A DNA stretch of 63,162 bases, filler included, from Lenisia limosa (GCA_001655205.1; 18 parts of 18 records of this genome joined end to end with filler, not necessarily neighbours in it), one strand, 5' to 3'. Shown: positions 6,701-49,324, counted from the whole stretch's first letter. The notes: generated by a model from the letters alone, not told the origin. Numbers and translations are program-made.

Positions 6701-8061
6701 GAATGGGAGACCAAAACTATCGTGTGTGTGTGGGGGGGGGGGGNNNNNNNNNNNNNNNNNNNNNNNNNNNNNNNNNNNNNNNNNNNNNNNNNNNNNNNNN
6801 NNNNNNNNNNNNNNNNNNNNNNNACGTACCTCAGTCTGGACCTCGTAGGAAATGAACTTTTTGACTCCACCGTACTTCTTCTTCTTATGTGGCTCCTGTG
6901 ATCCAATGAATACACTGTGGGTAGCAGCAAGTCCAGCAGTAAAATTCCAGATACATAGCGTATATATCATATCACACTATATCATATAACATATATGAAT
7001 AGCCAAACTTCACTTTAAATTCCAAAAAATAGTCTGGAATTTTGAAAGAGTATCAATCTTCGCATCTACTTTTTGTAGAAATGTAGCTTCAATACCTACC
7101 TGGACAACAATTGTGAACCGGGGTTCCTCATCAGTCCATCTCCTTGAGGCCTGAATATTTCAGTTAAATAAATAGAGAGAAAAAACATTGTGCTTTAATG
7201 GGTTCCAAAGCTTATCGCCCTACGCACATCAATGGGGTGCTTGATTGTGACTTCACCCTCATCAAAGTTCAGGTCATCGAAATTTGTAACTTCATCCCCA
7301 CCAGCAGCACCATCGTCGTCATCTTCATCAAAATCCTTTTTGGTTAACGATAAAAAAACTTTCCATAATAGACTATATCATATAGTAATATATCATATCA
7401 TATGCATATGATATAGTATAAGAATACATGGAATGTTCAATGTAGGCCAAGTTTAACTTTGAGACTTGTATGTATCAAAAAAATATCTGTTTTTTTCAAG
7501 ACGAGAGAATAGAAATACACCCCTCCCACATCAAACGCCATGGTTTTTCTGTTATCATTGGCCTTAGACTTTTGCTCTTCCACATCTGAAAAGGGGTAAT
7601 GATAACTCTCGCGTAAAATAAGATGTAATAATGCTAATGAATAAAAAGAGGTTGTATCGGGCCAGAACCATCCTATTNNNNNNNNNNNNNNNNNNNNNNN
7701 NNNNNNNNNNNNNNNNNNNNNNNNNNNNNNNNNNNNNNNNNNNNNNNNNNNNNNNNNNNNNNNNNNNNNNNNNNNNNNNNNNNNNNNNNNNNNNNNNNNN
7801 NNNNNNNNNNNNNNNNNNNNNNNNNNTCTCCAGAACGCCTTACAATTAGCAGGGTACCAGCCAGTTTTGCCATTGCAAGAGCCTTCGTTCCACCCGTCGT
7901 CGCCCTCAGTCACAAGCTCAATCGTGTCTCCTTGACTGCAAGTTGAGAACGATTAGCATGTGCTATTTCCAAGGACAGTCTATTTTGTGACAGATTCGCT
8001 GAAAATATATAACAGCCCCCACCTGAAATTTAGGTTATTACCATCATCGTCTTCAAAGTCG
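3716..8061 (-). CDS. SH3-PX-BAR sorting nexin (SNX9/18/33-like), partial
   Basis: SH3 exon 7844-7935 ([30 protein letters not shown]). PX exons: RFTIVVQ|[22 protein letters not shown]|, 6471-6585 [59 protein letters not shown] and [21 protein letters not shown]-like helical exons run to [25 protein letters not shown]. Domain order matches the SNX9 family. Confidence 0.85.
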
Positions 8062-8375
8062 NNNNNNNNNNNNNNNNNNNNNNNNNNNNNNNNNNNNNNN
8101 NNNNNTTAATTAATTAANNNNNNNNNNNNNNNNNNNNNNNNNNNNNNNNNNNNNNNNNNNNCAGATACAACCTTAGTTTTTATTTCAGTGCTATATATAA
8201 GTCAGTCAAAACATGGAATGGGTGTTTTGTGTATTCGAGTTTTTTTTTTTCCAAAGAGGGTGTTGCAAATTTCATTCATGAAGAAATGAAAGTCAGAATT
8301 GTTATGAAAAGAAAGTATTTTTAAGACACTACGTGTTTGTGTGTGGGGGTGATATTCAACAGTTGTACTTTCATC

Positions 8376-9535: not shown

Positions 9536-10605
9536 CAGCATTGCATCCAGCGTAGTAAAGGGGAATTGTTATGCAAAAAAAAATAAAAAATAATAATAAT
9601 CAAACAAAGAAAAAAAAGAAGAAAAAAGGGAAAAAAAGACAGCTCCACCCTCTCACTTCAGATCTGTGGACATTTTGTACTTCCTCAGAAGCTTAACTGC
9701 ATCATTTACCTGGAAGGTTAGATACCCATGATATCACTCTTAGATCTTTTACACATATGAACGAACAGTTACACAGATATATATCCACTCTTGTGATAAA
9801 TGACCAACAAGCCACAATGATACTCTGATACACTCGGAATGAACCCTCGTGTTATCTTCTTTCACTTTAATAGTCGGTCATACGATCATACCACTAGTCT
9901 TATGAATGTCTATGTTCTATGGTTTCACTGAAAATATCGATAGTTTTCGAGGATTTATCAAGAAATTCAGTCTATTTTCGAACCAAAGTGAAGCTCTATT
10001 AATATCACTATAAGTATCTTCACCCCACTCCCCCCACAGGAAGCTTGAATTTGTAGAGTTCCTTGAAGTTGGCGTTTGCCTCGGCCTGGACCTCACTGGA
10101 AAACTCCGAGTCTGGCCGGGCGTGGGGGTCCGCGGCGGCAGGGGCAGGTTTTGTTGAGGGGACAGGAAGGACTCCTTGGTTGTCTGGGCGGGAGTGAAAT
10201 TGGAAAATGTATGAAACAAAAAAAAACCCATCGACTCTGAGTGAATGGAGTAAGAAAAAAAGAAAAAAAACCCAAAGCCACCACACAAGAATAGAAATGT
10301 AACTGCCATCAACTCTGTACTTGTTCACGTGCCACGATAATAATTGAAACACAGTGTATATGCACATCATATGTAGTAAGTAGTACATGGATGTCATTAA
10401 AACGTCATGAAAATGTTAAATAAACATATAATAAATGTAATAAATGTAATATTCCATATAATATGCAAAAACTACCAATATGCCACCAACTTTGCACTTG
10501 CTCGCGGGCCATAAGACGCGCAACGCTTGGGTTTCGCGCCACTACGCTCGACGCAGCCTCTTTGAGATTCTCCACCATGCTGGAGGGGAGGGACTTGGCC
10601 GCTGA
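9536..10605 (-). CDS. Partial multi-exon gene, unknown product
   Basis: Exons SAAKSLPSSMVENLKEAASSVVARNPSVARLMAREQVQS, DNQGVLPVPSTKPAPAAADPHARPDSEFSSEVQAEANANFKELYKFKLP and VNDAVKLLRKYKMSTDL have GT-AG boundaries. Confidence 0.55.
9921..9996. mobile_element. Family A MITE, internally deleted, reverse orientation
   Basis: ggtttcactgaaaatatcgatagttttcgaggatttatcaagaaattcagtctattttcgaaccaaagtgaagctc|ta. Confidence 0.8.
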
Positions 10606-40793: not shown

Positions 40794-41220
40794 GTATGAG
40801 GGTTTAGAAAACATCTTTTTTGGATTATTTGGTTTGGCATTTACTTTTTTTATTAAANNNNNNNNNNNNNNNNNNNNNNNNNNNNNNNNNNNNNNNNNNN
40901 NTTAATTAATTAANNNNNNNNNNNNNNNNNNNNNNNNNNNNNNNNNNNNNNNNNNNNCAAACCTGTGGTGTGCTGCTCCTGTGCACAAAGTGGGTGAGGG
41001 TGCTCTTTTCACGATTAGTGTTCCTCATAAAAGTTGTCCGTATTCTCATTCCCTGTCACAGATTTTTCGGTTTGTAATTAGTGCCTTTTCACCAGTATTC
41101 TTCATTTCCTTCGTTTGCCCATGATACTCCCCCTATGTCCGGGCTTTTTTTTTTGTTGTTATCAGTTGATTTTGGGCTTTTTTATTTCATAAATTTTCCA
41201 ATTTTACCCCCCCCCCCCAG

Positions 41221-42568
41221 TGCTGACGGGCCTCTCTGCAATGTACCATCGTCATTCCGGCATGGCTGTTTGCTCTGAATGCCACCCAGTGAGGGGGGGT
41301 CGTATCTTGTCTGTGTGTGTGGGTGTGACAGGGAAGATATTCTTTTACTCTGTTCGTGGTTAGCACGTAACGATATTCTTCATCGTTTTTTCCTTCGTTT
41401 TTAATCAACCCTTTCGCAGACCTTCAGCACCAATGTTGGCATTTCAGTACCCTACAATAGCCTGGCTGAAGACGTCAAAACCCTGGTTCCCATTTTCGGC
41501 TCTCCTCAGGTCCGTTCCCGCTTGGTTGCTTCTTCGCTTTCCTTCTTTCTTTGCATTCTTTCTCTTTTTTTCTTCTTGCTTTGTTTTTCGTACTCTTTGT
41601 TTCTCCCCTTTCTCTTTATTATCCTCTCACCTATATTCTCCCTGCTCACGCTTTCAGGTCCATGAGCTCCTGACTNNNNNNNNNNNNNNNNNNNNNNNNN
41701 NNNNNNNNNNNNNNNNNNNNNNNNTTCATTATCTGTATGTGTGTTATGTATATGTGGGCAGGTAGTAAAAGCAGTGTATTTCTTCCTTCCCAACCTCATA
41801 ATATTTCCTATGATCTGAAAAAGACCGGTAAAATATCGCTATTTATCGAGAATTCAGCCACCCATAATTAACCTGGGCATTTGATTTCACTCTTCAGTCG
41901 GCCAAGATCACCCCCGTACCCAATATGATGGAGCGCCTGGCTGAGGACCTCACCGTCCCCTCCATTGTCAAGAGATGGCTTATGGGCCTCAGCGGTGGGA
42001 CATCTTCTTTGCTTTCGAGTTATTTGACCCGTGAATAGTCTTTAATCATTTGTTATCAACCCTTGTGTGTTGTCAGCCAACAGAGCTGATTGGGCTTTTT
42101 TGTTCCATAAATTTACAAATTTTANNNNNNNNNNNNNNNNNNNNNNNNNNNNNNNNNNNNNNNNNNNNNNNNNNNNNNNNNNNNNNNNNNNNNNNNNNNN
42201 NNNNNNNNNNNNNNNNNNNNNNNNNNNNNNNNNNNNNNNNNNNNNNNNTCCGTGGATTCCTTACTGCTCACCCGGAGCGTGAATAAGCCTTTCTGTGTAA
42301 TATATTGTCTCTGTTTATTTACTACCTTGATTAAAAGCCTCCCTCAATAAAAATCAATAGTTGGTCTAAGATTGTCGAGACACTGAAACTCAAGGCCTTC
42401 AAGTCCTAATAATATATGACATTCTTCCAACAACGAATTAAATAAACCTAAAAATACAACCTTCCCTTAGGCAACTTCCATATTTGGGGTGCCGCCCATC
42501 CACACATCGCCCCGGTCGTCACCAAATTCGAAATCGGCACTATCGTCAAGTCTTTGTCCGTATTCTGA
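41221..42568 (+). CDS. 3' part of an unknown gene
   Basis: Exons TFSTNVGISVPYNSLAEDVKTL, SAKITPVPNMMERLAEDLTVPSIVKRWLMGLS and RGFLTAHPER|NFHIWGAAHPHIAPVVTKFEIGTI have GT-AG boundaries. No family recognised. Confidence 0.55.
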
Positions 42569-42785: not shown

Positions 42786-45700
42786 ATACCCGCTTCTCCT
42801 GTTGTGACATCTTCGAATTGCGAAAGGGCTGCTAAAGGCAAGCCACGACCTGTATAGTAAGCGATAGGACGGTCTCACCAATTGCTAACGTAATGATTCT
42901 CAACCCATCTTCCCATCTTGTTTTGTTGTTCTCAAACCATCTTCCCATCTTGTTTTGTTGTTCTCAACCCATCTTCCCATCTTGCTTTGTTGTTCTCAAC
43001 CCGTGTGTATTAAATTGATTTTGAGTTTTTTTTGTTTCCTAAATTATCCAATTGTACTCCCCCCCCCTCCCGTACCGGCTGAAGGCCGTTTGAGAATGGG
43101 CTCATAATCTGGTTCTGGTCCGGCATCATCCTTTAGGGGGAAATAAGNNNNNNNNNNNNNNNNNNNNNNNNNNNNNNNNNNNNNNNNNNNNNNNNNNNNN
43201 NNNNNNNNNNNNNNNNNNNNNNNNNNNNNNNNNNNNNNNNNNNNNNNNNNNNNNNNNNNNNNNNNNNNNNNNNNNNNNNNNNNNNNNNNNNNNNNNNNNN
43301 NNNNNNNNNNNNNNNGCCAAATTGCAACATCATATACTATGATATACTATATCCCATAGTAAGTCCCCAATTACTGTATACGAAGGGCCCATAGTAGCGA
43401 GACGATTGTTGCGTCTCCTTGCTGGCTTTGGGGCTGGGGGCTGAGGAGGTAAGGACAAATATGCAGTGATGTGATAAGTCCCGACACGATTGACTAAAGG
43501 TAAAGCTCAATATCTCTGTCATGACTTATCGGTCAATATGTAATTATATAAGTGGCTACAAAGGAAAGCTCTCGTCTTCGTTTTATTGTTTAGGGTGCCT
43601 AAAAGTATGGGGTTAGAGGTTGTTTGTCGAGCATGCCCATCACATTTATAGATACTATTGACGATAGTGTCTTAACACCAAGTTTATATCATGTTTCTCA
43701 GAGATCATGGATTATGTATTATTACAAACTCCACATGGTAACTCACCTCGACAGTCCTCGCGATTTCCTGTTGTTTCTTTACCTCCTCGAAGGGCGTGGC
43801 GTCATAAAGGTCTTCACCATCATCATCACCAAGCCAGTCCAGTCCACCTCCAAAGCCCCTTTCTGGGGGTAGTGTCAGATGCGTCTGTTATATCTTATAA
43901 TATATCACTCCAGTCATCAGAAATGCTGCAGTATTTCCTCCTCGCTTTATAGATTTACCGAAAATTTATGAGAGATTATTGGTTTACTGCGGATTAACTA
44001 GGTCTTACCGATATTAAGGATATCAAGGATTATCGAGGATTTATCGTTAATTGAGGATTTATCAGGATTCGAGGATTTATCGCGGTTTTGTCACACAACT
44101 TACTTTCCATTGCCGCAGGGGGTGACTGAGCCTTAGTCGGGGGCGAGGGGTCCTCCAAATGTGAGGCTGCAGTATCCATTGCGTCAGGGTCCCAGTCCTA
44201 AGGGGTTAGTGGAAACCTTCGATTTTGCTTCCTATCATTTATTGATGCATTGCTGACCCCTATCCCACATCGTCAAGACTGTCATCAGAGAGTGAGTGGC
44301 GGATGTTGATCGGCTTCTGCCGGACCAAGCCGCTTCCGATACTGTCCATAGAGCCGACCGCTTCAATACCGCCTTTGGGGGGTAAGGATAATGGGATATT
44401 CAGGGGGTTCTGTGAAACAGTTGAAAATAAAAATCAACTCTTAAGGCTAAAAAAACCCAACAAAAACCCAATAAAAAACCAATAAAAAACAAAAAACCAA
44501 CAAAAAAAAGAAAACCATGATGTAAATCACCTTTGCCACCCCCCAACCATGATGTAAATCATCATCACTTTCGTCCCAGCTGCCTCGCNNNNNNNNNNNN
44601 NNNNNNNNNNNNNNNNNNNNNNNNNNNNNNNNNNNNNNNNNNNNNNNNNNNNNNNNNNNNNNNNNNNNNNNNNNNNNNNNNNNNNNNNNNNNNNNNNNNN
44701 NNNNNNNNNNNNNNNNNNNNNNNNNGAGGGATTGTAAAATATCATAAGCTAAAAGCCCATACAGCACTGTTGGCTAAACATAGACAACACTGTAGCCCAT
44801 ACACAGCTCTGTTGGCTACACATAGTATCAACTTGATGCTGGTGGTGGAGAGTCATAAAGGAAGTTTTAAAACATAAAACAAAACTAACCAAAATCAACT
44901 CTGTTGGGAAAGGTGAGTTTTTGAGACCCCTCAAAAAAAAATAAAAAAAAAAAGAAAAAAAGAAAAAAAAAAAAANNNNNNNNNNNNNNNNNNNNNNNNN
45001 NNNNNNNNNNNNNNNNNNNNNNNNNNNNNNNNNNNNNNNNNNNNNNNNNNNNNNNNNNNNNNNNNNNNNNNNNNNNNNNNNNNNNNNNNNNNNNNNNNNN
45101 NNNNNNNNNNNNNNNNNNNNNNNNNNNNNNNNNNNNNNNNNNNNNNNNNNTGGCCGGGGCTGGGCGGAGTTAAAGTGGAAAATTTATGAAACAAAAAATA
45201 ATCAACTCTGTTGGCTGAAACACACGAGCTGAAATGAAATCATGAAAGGGGAGGAGGTGATAAGAGGGCTGAGGGAGTGATAAGAGGGCTGAGGGAGTGA
45301 GTATATAATGGGGTGGAAGCAACACTCTACTCTGAATGTTGATATGTGTGGGTACCCATCCATGCCTTCCGATCCCAAGTCCCTGTTTTTTTGTGTATTT
45401 CTTTTTCTTTAATAAATAAACATTTCTACACCTGCAAAAAGTAAGATTTGCGTCATAATAAACATGGTTGAAACGCCAGAGAACAAAACCCACCATCAAC
45501 GTCCCTTCGAGAATCCGAGAGGCGCAACGGGGAAATTGGGGGTGACATTGTTTCATCAGACCGACTCTGTAACAGACTAGGCCCCATACTAGAAGCTTGG
45601 GCCGCTGGTAGGTGGAAGGGTGAGGCGAAGGGAGTTTTAATGGTGGCTGAAAATGGAAATTTATTCGTTGGTGGGAAAATGGTAATAATGTCTTCTCAAT

Positions 45701-48700
45701 ACTATGTAGATATTTTGTCAAAATTTCCAAAGAAAAATAGTGATATCGATAAATTTCGACAAATTTCTTTAAAATCTAAGGCTGGATTAGGATCTCAGGT
45801 AGAGTCACAAACCTGGAGGAGACAAGGGCGGAGTGCTGGTTTTGATAACTACCGGGGCAACATACTGAGGGGGTGAGGCGTTTCAAACGGGAAAGTTGTT
45901 TCGGATATCCAAAGAAATCCGCAATCCATGCGGAATAGACGCTGTACTGAAGGTATCCACAGGTCTTATATTTAAAATTATCTATTAGAGTCTTGCTCTT
46001 CAAAAACAAACCTCGGGGGCCTCAACAGTGAGATGTGCTTCCGAAGGTTCCGACAAATGTTCCGACAAATCATCCGATAATTCATCGGACATGTCTGCCT
46101 CAATGCTGGCATCCAGAGCGTCAAAATCAATATCTGTGTTGAAACCTGGGGGTGTGATGATGAATATTGGCTTACGGGGGGAGGGGAATTTAGATGATGA
46201 TGAACCGGAGAATATTGTGAGGAAAACCAATAGAAAATTGCAGATTTTGTAATCACAGTAACCAGGAATAAGTAGGCACTTTACTTACCTACATCCCGTT
46301 GTGTCGGGGGCTTAGGGAGAAGTTGGGGGGACAAGGACGGTGATAGTGACCGCGAAAGGTCCTATGCAATTACAACAAGATTTACGGTAACACAAAACCC
46401 TCCAATCATAGACCGAAGCCATCCATATCATCAGGAACATCAACCACGGAATACTTAGCTTCAAGTCAAGGTTGATGGGAAGCACATTTTACGAAAGAAA
46501 AGCAGATATTTGAAGATAAGAAGCATCAGAAATTGCTCAATATCATCATTATATCCCCCTCACTTCATCAATTTGTGGACTTGGTGATAGGGGTTGCAGA
46601 GTTCGGATGTAAGGATCTGGCGAGGCTGAAAAGTTAAAATAATGAATCTCTGGTTATGAAATCTGATAATATTAGCCTAATAGTGTAAGACCAGCAGTGT
46701 CAAAGTCGATCTACCCCCCCTTCTATTTGGCCACATTCCACACACAATAAAAGCAGAGGATATTCGGTTTTTCAGAACCAGCCAAACCTTCTCGAAGCGG
46801 ACTGGTAGGCTCATTGTCGAGCGGACTCGGCTCGGATAACTGCGAAACTTCCGATGCTTCCGCTTCCGATGAAGTGAAACTTGGAATTTCGGTGTCAAAT
46901 GCCGGGGGTTCTGGAAGGGGGGGTTTGAATTCTGGGGAGGCAGATATATGATATATTATTGGAAAATGGTAATTCTACTGTGTAACAAACCTTCATGTTC
47001 TTGATGGACGGTTTCTTCCTTTTCGAGCGGATTTACTTGGGAATTAATGGCAGCAGCGTCAACTTCATTTAGTCCATCTGGCAGGTTTGTTGATGATTCT
47101 GAAGGGTGAAGATGCCTTCATTATTTTCTTTATTTTTATTCCTATCATTCCCCTATCACAGACCTAGTACAGACCATATCCCACCCCCCTTACCGTCACT
47201 CAGAGACAGATCCGGTAGTTCAGTGTTGAAAGCCTCGGGTTCTGGCGGGGAAGGTTCTCGCTAAATCCAGGTAAAAGATGGTGCTTCACTTCGGTTCGAA
47301 TATGATTTCTCGATAAATCCTCGAAAACTATCGATATTTTACCGGTATTTTTCGAACTGAAGTGAAGCCCTAGTTAAGAACTGGCCCTCTGTGATAGCAT
47401 TGAACGAAGCACCTTTAACTGTCCTTATCCTTAGCCAAATCCAAGCACTCGAATTTCTGTATAAGGCAATAACTGCTCTCAGTATTTTCTATGCCTTGTA
47501 GATCCGTGCAATTGTTATTTTTTGAGGGCAATAATTGACAAAGTGCGAAACCAATTTTCCTGAAATGTCTGCTAATAATATGTTCACTTCAAATTTTGCA
47601 AACGATTTCTCAATTATTACAAGGAGCCCTAGTCCTCGATATTTCTGGGGCTTTACAATAAAAAAAGAGTCCCGGCACCTACCTGAGGGGAGTCATCAAA
47701 ACGAGTGTCAACGTCATCATCATTTGTAGGCGATTTCCTAGGTATCAAAGGTGACGGAGTGGAAGGAACATCCAGCGATCCTGCTTCTTGCTCCAAACGA
47801 GCCTCGTCATTTCGGCCGTCTTCAATGGAGATTTTTGAGTCATCTGCAGTGTCATCCAATCCCGACACGCCCGCAAGGAGGTTCTCCATATCAATTGAGA
47901 CGTCAAAGCCAGCCATAAGACTTTGCTCAGAGGGACGCCGGGCTGTGGAGAGGGGGTAAGAATTGACAATTAATGAAACACCCTTTGTTCTTATAAAAAA
48001 CTATGTATTGAATACAACACAAGGAAAACAAGTCACATCAGGGCCACCCCCCTCCCCCAGAATTATCTCTGTTGGTCAAGCATTTTAGAAGCACATTTTG
48101 AAAAACAAAAAAAAACAAAGCAGAAGGGGGGGGATTTATTATAGCCTTCGGTGCAATAATATCTTACACTATCCTCTTTCAACACTCGTGTTTTTTTTTA
48201 GCTAACCTGATTTTGGGCTTTTTCGTTTCAAAAATTATCCAATTTTACCCCCCCCCCTCACCCTCTCTAACCCCCCCGGTGTGGGCGACAAAGCCAGACA
48301 CGGCGGCGGCAGCCAGAGATGACGCCATCGCAGCTCTCGCAATTGTTTCGGCATGGGTGTCGGCCGAGGCTAAGGCGGGTTAGAAGGCTACTGTACTAGA
48401 GTGTCGTGAAAATGGTATATTACGTCATATAGCTCCAAAACTGATGAAAGAGCTACTGGGTGGACCAGGGTTGGAATTGGAGCTCCGGGTAATTCATATT
48501 TTTTTAAATATGAATTGCCCGGGCTAATTTAGTGAGGCAATAGTAAGTGCACTGCTCTGATGAATCAGGGCAAAAATGCTCCTGGTAATATTCTGCGTCT
48601 GTTATCTATATGTAGTGGTTAAGGCTCTCATATATACAGTATGTGTGTTCATTATTGTTTTCTTTTACCTTATTAGTTGATTCCTTCCAACAGGCTTAAC

Positions 48701-49117: not shown

Positions 49118-49324
49118 CTGTGGGGGTGGGTGAGTAATATTAGAAATGTAAGAAACAAAAAAGCCCAAAATCAACTCTNNNNNNNNNNNNNNNNNNNNNN
49201 NNNNNNNNNNNNNNNNNNNNNNTTAATTAATTAANNNNNNNNNNNNNNNNNNNNNNNNNNNNNNNNNNNNNNNNNNNNGCTTTTTTTTTGTGTCATAAAT
49301 TTTCCAGTTTTACTCACCCCCCAG

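Follow-up and report, generated by a model that had tools for sequence, protein, structure and literature searches.

How new spliceosomal introns originate is a long-standing question, and introners are, to our knowledge, the sole mechanism of intron gain known at the genomic scale. Here, we analyse a predicted intron of 319 nucleotides (nt) from Lenisia limosa (GCA_001655205.1) whose two ends resemble each other in inverted orientation, together with the repeat family to which both ends belong. The predicted intron lies on the minus strand, at 47943..48261 of a stretch of 63,162 nt (hereafter the window), in which 18 parts of 18 records of this genome are joined end to end with filler and are not necessarily neighbours; coordinates given below with no contig name refer to the window.

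Among the closest described systems, the introners of Micromonas pusilla and Aureococcus anophagefferens are DNA transposons that resemble miniature inverted-repeat transposable elements (MITEs) and carry terminal inverted repeats (TIRs). A fixed target-site duplication (TSD) of 3 nt or 8 nt supplies the other splice site, element and duplication making up the whole intron (PMC11282704). The introner-like elements of classes 4 and 5 in Symbiodinium and Polarella combine inverted repeats with a GHNN duplication of 4 nt, the first copy of which is the 5′ splice site, and their donors are frequently GA or GC (bioRxiv 10.1101/2020.10.14.339549). In Amoebophrya, inverted repeats of 8-20 nt pair the intron ends, the splice sites are non-canonical and direct repeats of 3-5 nt lie over the boundaries (PMC7789003). 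Introner families that lack a TIR or a TSD, or to which no mechanism is assigned, also exist (PMC9860276), and about 72% of families are uncategorised (PMC12130899).

We propose that the ends of the predicted intron of L. limosa are probably, though far from certainly, two opposite fragments of an abundant intron-terminal element, introner-like and devoid of TIRs. The element would be non-autonomous, ~135-165 nt long, and would usually be found at the extreme 3′ end of an intron, reading in the direction of the host gene.

A 3′-anchored repeat family at predicted intron ends

The repeat was followed in the part of the window that holds the predicted intron (hereafter the piece) and in 124 kb of added DNA of the same organism, all from one assembly of the European Nucleotide Archive (ERZ3820729) that is 100% identical to the window in the overlaps and probably derives from the same sample. 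Read toward its C-run, the repeat is an open frame (..VINPCVLSANRVDFGLFCFINFPILPPPP), and the corresponding peptide profile matched 86 called open reading frames (ORFs), of which every one looked up falls in ERZ3820729. The census set comprises the piece and ten contig stretches (L014-L023), that is, 131.9 kb in 11 separate stretches. In this set, an iteratively built 135-position nhmmer profile that started with the reference copy L016:9999-10159 finds 60 copies of the family, or 0.45 per kb; 7 of the 60 matches come from the piece, a stretch that had not been chosen for them.

The same 3′ end (..CCAATTTTAC followed by a C-run, at model position 130 or beyond) is present in 48 of the 60 copies and the 5′ end (position 2 or before) in just 12. 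Starts are evenly scattered over positions 1-100, and the copies stop sharply at these variable 5′ points without fading out. In local alignment, the copies have a median identity of 0.89 to the consensus; between pairs of copies, the median is 0.79. Partial head-to-tail tandems are common, and at two loci position 124 is joined to position 20-21, a shared junction that points to a subfamily carrying an internal tandem duplication. We had also considered the head-to-tail junctions as those of intron circles or lariats produced by rolling-circle copying; this is unsupported, the recurrent junction being the internal duplication of the subfamily.

The consensus has no inverted self-match at a word size of 7, hence no TIR. 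No TSD was found either, since the longest substrings common to both flanks of a copy do not exceed those of the control. By eye, a duplication of 3-8 nt is absent at L016:9999-10159, at the two homology-defined introns of L021 and L022 described below, and at 48261..47943, where the initial annotation had likewise seen none; duplications of 2-3 nt are possible in decayed copies. We saw neither a reverse transcriptase nor a transposase that could serve as a partner among the genes called in the fetched loci.

At their constant end, the copies are in contact with exon-like DNA. An AG follows the C-run directly in 16 of the 48 3′-complete copies (about 3 expected by chance) and after 3-12 nt in another 19, giving 35 of 48 with an AG at once or within 12 nt; in the remainder, the C-run is followed by another copy (3), a gap (1) or something else (9). 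The 60 nt past the run have a mean guanine-cytosine (GC) content of 0.54, and 82% of these flanks reach at least 0.5, a value reached by 25% of random 60-mers; in the 60 nt before the copy the mean is 0.39 (Wilcoxon p = 5e-7). Since this GC-rich DNA resembles the exons of this genome, we take the run to abut exons. Copies in the interior of an intron or with a low-GC flank are rare (about 4 of 46).

Two of the acceptors are fixed by protein homology. In L021, a galactokinase sequence (..APGRVNLIG|EHVDY..) spans a 284-nt intron, the last ~115 nt of which are a family copy followed by C11 and AG. In L022, the sequence of a NEK-like kinase (..MCENRPYN|AKSDVWAMGCILYEM.., with the junction at RPYN|AKSDVW) spans a 230-nt intron that opens with GTGGGGGGTAACC and closes with a family copy, C16 and GTAG. 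Intron boundaries other than those fixed by homology are predictions based on GT-AG ends, frame continuity and GC contrast. In L020, neighbouring repeat-bearing introns at ~7700-8100 and 9750-10150 have similar upstream exon-like flanks (..TTTTAGCCTGCCCCAAGCAC.TACTC..), suggesting that an exon-intron unit was duplicated in tandem within a single gene.

The tip of the element (..CCAATTTTAC + C(8-16) + AG) would supply a branch-point-like yUnAy sequence, a poly-C pyrimidine tract and the acceptor AG. The TTTTAC before the C-run, 10-20 nt away from the AG, can be read as the yUnAy branch motif, and we infer that the tip is used as a 3′ splice signal. A scan of metagenome contigs with the repeat core gave 11 chance matches, most of them at terminator-like sites of metagenomes that are unrelated. 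In a search of sequencing runs, one contains the sequence, and a poly-A metatranscriptome run has next to no words in common with it. Words of the repeat sequence are absent from the supplements of PMC9860276, word matches in the literature led to unrelated papers, and no citation of ERZ3820729 was found in the papers searched.

The predicted intron and its two arms

An orphan gene on the minus strand most likely contains the 319-nt stretch as a spliceosomal intron, predicted from its GT-AG ends (GTGAGG.. at 48261 and ..CACAG at 47943) and from the exon join. On the minus strand it begins with GTGAGGGGGGGGGGTAAAATTGG.. at 48261 and finishes with ..CTTACCCCCTCTCCACAG at 47943; in a longer reading of the same strand, 48261..47943 opens with GTGAGGGGGGGGGGTAAAATTGGATAATTTTTGAAAC and closes with GTTTCATTAATTGTCAATTCTTACCCCCTCTCCACAG. 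Its excision would link the predicted first coding exon (48262..48328, minus strand, from the ATG at 48328; hypothetical translation MASSLAAAAVSGFVAHTGGVRE, then 1 nt) to predicted exon 2 (47683..47942, minus strand; ..ARRPSEQSLMAGFDVS...DDSPQ, then the donor GTAGGT). As the initial annotation had stated, this join (HTGGVRE|ARRPSEQSLMAGFDV.., or MASSLAAAAVSGFVAHTGGVRE|ARRPSEQSLMAGFDVS...) keeps the frame, which past exon 2 runs on through more short acidic exons. If translation started at the ATG at 47916 instead, the predicted intron would lie in the 5′ untranslated region. The encoded protein has no relative and no longer record among 1.8 billion representatives, the query with exon 2 returning only its own 87-amino-acid ORF (P0001), and the exon peptides of the piece have no Pfam match.

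The two ends of the predicted intron form an imperfect inverted pair of 37-39 nt, with a match of about 75%; in a repeat search, the pair (47941-47979 and 48225-48263) measures 39 nt and is 74% complementary. Local alignment of the 5′ half of the intron with the reverse complement of its 3′ half gives a score of 30, compared with a mean of 16 and a maximum of 24 among 500 shuffles, and RNA folding of the predicted intron pairs the two ends (z = -4.5). Thus, the imperfect inverted ends described in the initial annotation are real, and its observation that both match a single repeat is borne out as well. The 5′ arm (copy D; 48178..48261, model positions 57-135) reads toward its C-run on the plus strand and is therefore antisense to the host gene. 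It is matched by nhmmer at 7221-7297 of the piece with an expectation value (E) of 1.5e-12, and its alignment to the family consensus covers 83 nt with a score of 91. Seen from the gene strand, this arm has its tip, GTGA + G10 + TAAAATTGG, at the donor. The 3′ arm (copy H; 47943..47979, minus strand), the inverted partner of copy D, is a short sense fragment of ~30-37 nt that finishes with ..TTCTTACCCCCTCTCCACAG at the acceptor; it aligns with the consensus over ~30 nt with a score of 36, under the threshold of the nhmmer profile.

These two arms can be accounted for by the proposed element. A rare reversed copy would place its tip at the donor, where it would read GT(GA) + G-run + TAAAATTGG, as in the 5′ arm, and the 3′ arm would be the usual sense fragment. 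Two opposite copies would then lie at one intron, so that the inverted repeat would be a by-product and not two TIRs of one DNA transposon.

The piece carries at least seven copies of the family, namely copies A, B, C, E and F in addition to the arms D and H. In every assessable one, the G/C-run tip lies at a predicted splice site and the remainder inside the intron. Copies A, E, F and H finish in C-run(+AC)+AG at acceptors, and copies C and D open on the gene strand with GTACGGGA+G9 and GTGA+G10 at donors. Copy A (41164..41220, plus strand) belongs to a plus-strand gene and ends in ..TTTTAC + C12 + AG at that gene's acceptor, and the exon join across its intron stays open. Copy B (42028..42124, plus strand) has lost its C-run in an assembly gap (N). 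Copy E (45153..45232, minus strand, sense) has ..CTCCGCCCAG (..CCCAG) immediately before an exon encoding PPATQGFDTNIDDFDYEDSNLEK, and copy F (49119..49178, minus strand, sense) has ..CTCACCCACCCCCACAG at an acceptor. Copy C (42984..43075, plus strand) is antisense to a minus-strand gene and is the second clear donor-side copy; on the gene strand, the exon reads ..KRPSAG|GTACGGGA + G9 + AGTACAATTGG, with the frame set by hand. Three tandem copies of a 32-nt unit (TTCTCAACCCATCTTCCCATCTTGTTTTGTTG) at 42897-43002 adjoin copy C in the same predicted intron.

Two further contigs, L012 and L013, overlap the window. Copy F runs off the piece and is continued in L012:1-28, and L013 fills the N gap at 44977-45150, revealing there the exon PPATQGFDTNIDDFDYEDSNLEK that follows copy E. 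L013, a SPAdes contig, spans this gap with ~103 nt including the whole exon, and the window therefore overstates the length of the gap. The N gaps of the window (42125, 44977-45150 and others) adjoin homopolymer or poly-A tracts. Minus-strand exons from 47260 to 45150 encode, in the acidic orphan protein, a motif that recurs from exon to exon (PEAFNTELPDL, PPAFDTEIPSF, PPGFNTDIDFDAL, ATQGFDTNIDDFDY), for which neither a Pfam match nor a homologue was found. A homologue search with the plus-strand gene fragment of the piece gave none.

Homopolymer runs and the origin of the intron-terminal repeats

The 131.9 kb contain 143 G or C runs of at least 7, where base composition predicts about 4; the runs are thus ~40 times over-represented. 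They have a polarity: for 107 of 126, the GC-rich, exon-like side is the one 5′ of the G strand. A GT(GA) precedes 42 runs, and 50-69 runs, read on the other strand, have an AG within 12 nt. The runs mark intron ends about once per kb, just inside them (exon|GT-G-run and C-run-AG|exon); examples in the window lie at 41289-41299, 43057-43071, 46911-46925 and 47183-47193, and in the kinase gene of L022, GT(GA)+G4-12 is found at 5 of the 7 homology-defined donors. The family accompanies 31 of the 143 runs and is missing from 112; six go with a second small family, and 87 are singletons. As most runs lack the family, the homopolymers are a property of intron ends in this genome that goes beyond this repeat.

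Two other repeats were seen close to such runs or in introns. A third small family begins right after a G-run (G11-15 + TAAAACGAAGGAAATTTCGATGAAGAATATTGGCGTAAAGG..) at L015:116, L015:13677, L018:11226, L020:10268, L021:4856 and, on the minus strand, L021 position 2453; in L021 it lies ~45 nt inside an intron, away from the splice site. A Tc1/mariner-like MITE occurs in introns at 47281-47372, with partial relatives at 41817-41854 and 44020-44080, and also in L016-L020 and L022. It has TIRs of ~18 nt (TA|GGGCTTCACTTCGGTTCGAA...TTCGAACTGAAGTGAAGCCC|TA) and a core ATCGATA/TCGAGGATTTATCG, and 16 ends of it are present in 121 kb. This MITE is a true TIR element, unrelated to and unlike the intron-end family. 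The idea that G-runs are landing pads for several transposon families was rejected, as no more than 3 of the 16 MITE ends abut a run, and the TIR of the MITE itself begins with GGG.

With respect to origin, the intron-end element may be mobile and introner-like, though unclassified, possibly RNA-mediated, and may bring its own acceptor on landing. Its 3′ anchoring and sense bias, together with the lack of TIR and TSD, hint at a route via RNA or recombination. That it creates introns is our leading reading, which we hold with moderate confidence. Several points weigh against the proposed explanation as a whole. First, the 5′ portions of the repeat-bearing introns are mutually unrelated, a pattern equally compatible with intron creation and with insertion into older introns. 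Second, the spacers vary (0-20 nt from run to AG, 0-8 nt from GT to run), so that the splice dinucleotides may be the host's and not the element's; taken together, these two features would also accord with entry into, or overwriting of, older intron ends. Third, near-identical copies were not seen, the best non-tandem pairs being ~0.91 identical, and no very recent burst or activity is therefore evident in the sample. Fourth, a short inverted tip (GT + G12 + AGGTAATTG vs CCAATTTTACTCCC) is present in L016:9999-10159, a well-kept intron of 161 nt. Fifth, the contigs were recovered by means of ORFs running through sense copies, so that the 10 index copies are a biased sample; when these are subtracted, an AG within 12 nt is still found in 26 of 38. 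Finally, the gene strand was set independently for a minority of copies only. The nearest open frame of at least 100 codons was discarded as a guide to it, since a known plus-strand kinase exon has a longer antisense frame, and codon log-odds were too weak to tell gene strands apart.

The alternative that survives best, although we consider it unlikely, is that an ordinary non-autonomous repeat, SINE-like (short interspersed nuclear element) or spread by recombination, colonises pre-existing introns beside G/C runs and creates none, its sense copies by the acceptor persisting as harmless or as improvers of the pyrimidine tract. This would agree with the heterogeneous 5′ intron parts and variable spacers just described, and with the 3′ anchoring and 5′ truncation, which is the pattern of target-primed reverse transcription. 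In addition, some full-length copies are flanked by C-runs on both sides, and the 112 runs devoid of the repeat indicate that runs exist independently of it. However, the scarcity of interior or low-GC-flank copies would require an unusually precise target or strong selection, and the AG directly abuts the run in one third of the copies. Moreover, no TSD was found, and the copies have no poly-A tail, RNA polymerase III box or tRNA-like head (ARAGORN found no tRNA-like part in them; A and B boxes were looked for by eye only).

A further proposal, which we regard as doubtful, gives the homopolymers the leading part: a hitherto undescribed mechanism would make or rebuild introns, with inserted or copied DNA becoming linked to exons via G/C tracts (exon|GT-G(7-16)..., ...C(7-16)-AG|exon), with an RNA-mediated, 3′-anchored element spreading acceptor "half introns" (TTTTAC, poly-C, AG) without TIR or TSD.

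The initial annotation had instead proposed that many introns of this genome are relics of one intron-generating TIR element. This is partly supported: one family occurs at intron ends genome-wide with its tip at splice sites, which is a hallmark of introners; the TIR type assigned to the element is not supported. We judge it improbable that the family is a DNA-transposon introner with two inverted arms (GT + G-run + TAAAATTGG.. / ..CCAATTTTA + C-run + AG), one of which has usually decayed. Such an element would explain why both arms are present in 48261..47943 and why L016:9999-10159 has a short inverted tip. It would also suit the abundance of GT+G-run donors (42) and C-run+AG acceptors (53-69), which are complementary except for the first base, and the segments in which GT+G-run ... 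C-run+AC can be read on both strands. Nevertheless, the consensus has no TIR, the 5′ ends are sharp and variable rather than fading, and the flank comparison found no TSD.

Among the 31 arm-bearing G/C runs of at least 7, a clear GT donor is found only at copies C and D, both in the piece; 2 are ambiguous and the remaining ones have the acceptor configuration. Of the 42 GT[GA]0-3G7+ sites, 2 have a family arm and 40 have unique sequence after the G-run, not a decayed arm. With ~33 introns bearing an acceptor-side copy and a donor-side arm in ~1% of introns, chance alone predicts 0.3-0.4 two-armed introns, and a single clear case, 48261..47943, is observed. A G-run lies within 150 nt upstream of ~9 of 40 acceptor-side copies, near the overall share of G-run donors, and the pairing of G-run donors with C-run acceptors does not exceed independence; all these estimates are rough because the introns are unannotated. 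As for the 30 pairs of G-run donor and C-run acceptor within 1.2 kb, taking them as two-ended introns is an overcount: the pair in the piece corresponds to two introns with an exon between them. On these rough counts, two-armed introns are not in excess of chance and give no support to two original arms. Given the rarity of the repeat on the donor side, the loss of one arm is not the natural reading; the usual copy would never have had a second one.

It is very improbable that the family is a conserved functional RNA hosted by introns, such as a small nucleolar RNA or a regulatory hairpin, and not mobile. Its fixed place near the intron 3′ end would be in keeping with such a role; its density, variable truncation and tandem partial copies are not. 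The repeat has no Rfam match at the gathering score in L016 and L018, which hold 19 copies, and inspection of the sense strand revealed no C/D or H/ACA boxes. The one Rfam match in these two contigs is a 5S rRNA gene (L016:4516-4634, 73.5 bits), which, like a tRNA-Gly(TCC) gene at L015:15600-15671, lies among protein-coding genes. Lastly, a chance or low-complexity match between G/C runs and A/T-rich intron sequence, both of which the two arms do contain, can practically be dismissed, given that 0 of 500 shuffles reach the observed score, that the match extends 23 nt past the run at 79%, and that the 5′ arm has so low a profile E.

If the element, at about one copy per 2-3 kb, truly creates introns, this would point to a route other than cut-and-paste, possibly RNA-based. 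If the repeat merely colonises old introns, it cautions against taking intron-terminal repeats by themselves as proof of an introner origin. G/C homopolymer intron ends with a strict polarity are unusual in themselves. They bear on splice-site recognition, through the G-run after GT and the poly-C pyrimidine tract, and on genome assembly, because N gaps of the window sit at such runs.

Comparison with introners and retroposons

A common sequence in many unrelated introns, as expected of introners, is found here in 60 copies over 11 stretches, and similarity at the intron boundary is seen at the 3′ boundary and not at the 5′ boundary. The fungal introner-like elements of van der Burgt et al. 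(2012) are reportedly in sense orientation, with their own splice signals and neither TIR nor TSD, as in the family described here. They are also said to be whole introns of fairly constant length, with no 3′ anchoring at variable 5′ ends and no homopolymer tips.

Non-LTR (long terminal repeat) retroposons and SINEs share several traits with the family: a constant 3′ end beside a homopolymer (48 of 60 copies are 3′-complete), variable 5′ truncation and lack of autonomy. Unlike SINEs, the family has a C-run as its tail and no A-rich or simple-repeat tail, no flanking duplications, and no head with RNA polymerase III boxes or similarity to tRNA, 5S or 7SL RNA, and its placement is tied to splice sites.

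Paired intron ends, as in Amoebophrya, are found here in 48261..47943, an inverted pair being exceptional in the family; unlike Amoebophrya introners, the introns have canonical GT-AG sites and no direct repeats. The dinoflagellate introners likewise put one element end at the splice site (10.1101/2020.10.14.339549). In contrast to those of Symbiodinium and Polarella, the donors here are GT, no 4-nt duplication is present at four well-defined introns, and the ends are G/C homopolymers.

The surveys of introner families (PMC9860276, PMC12130899) need similarity from both intron ends or whole annotated introns, whereas the family described here is anchored at one end of predicted introns. As in the uncategorised families, it is a repeated intron sequence without the hallmarks of a known transposon class. 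Compared with the introners of Micromonas and Aureococcus, it lacks both TIR and TSD, and what its copies have in common is limited to the 3′ part of the intron; with them it shares a repeat common to many introns, one end of which lies at the splice site and would supply it.

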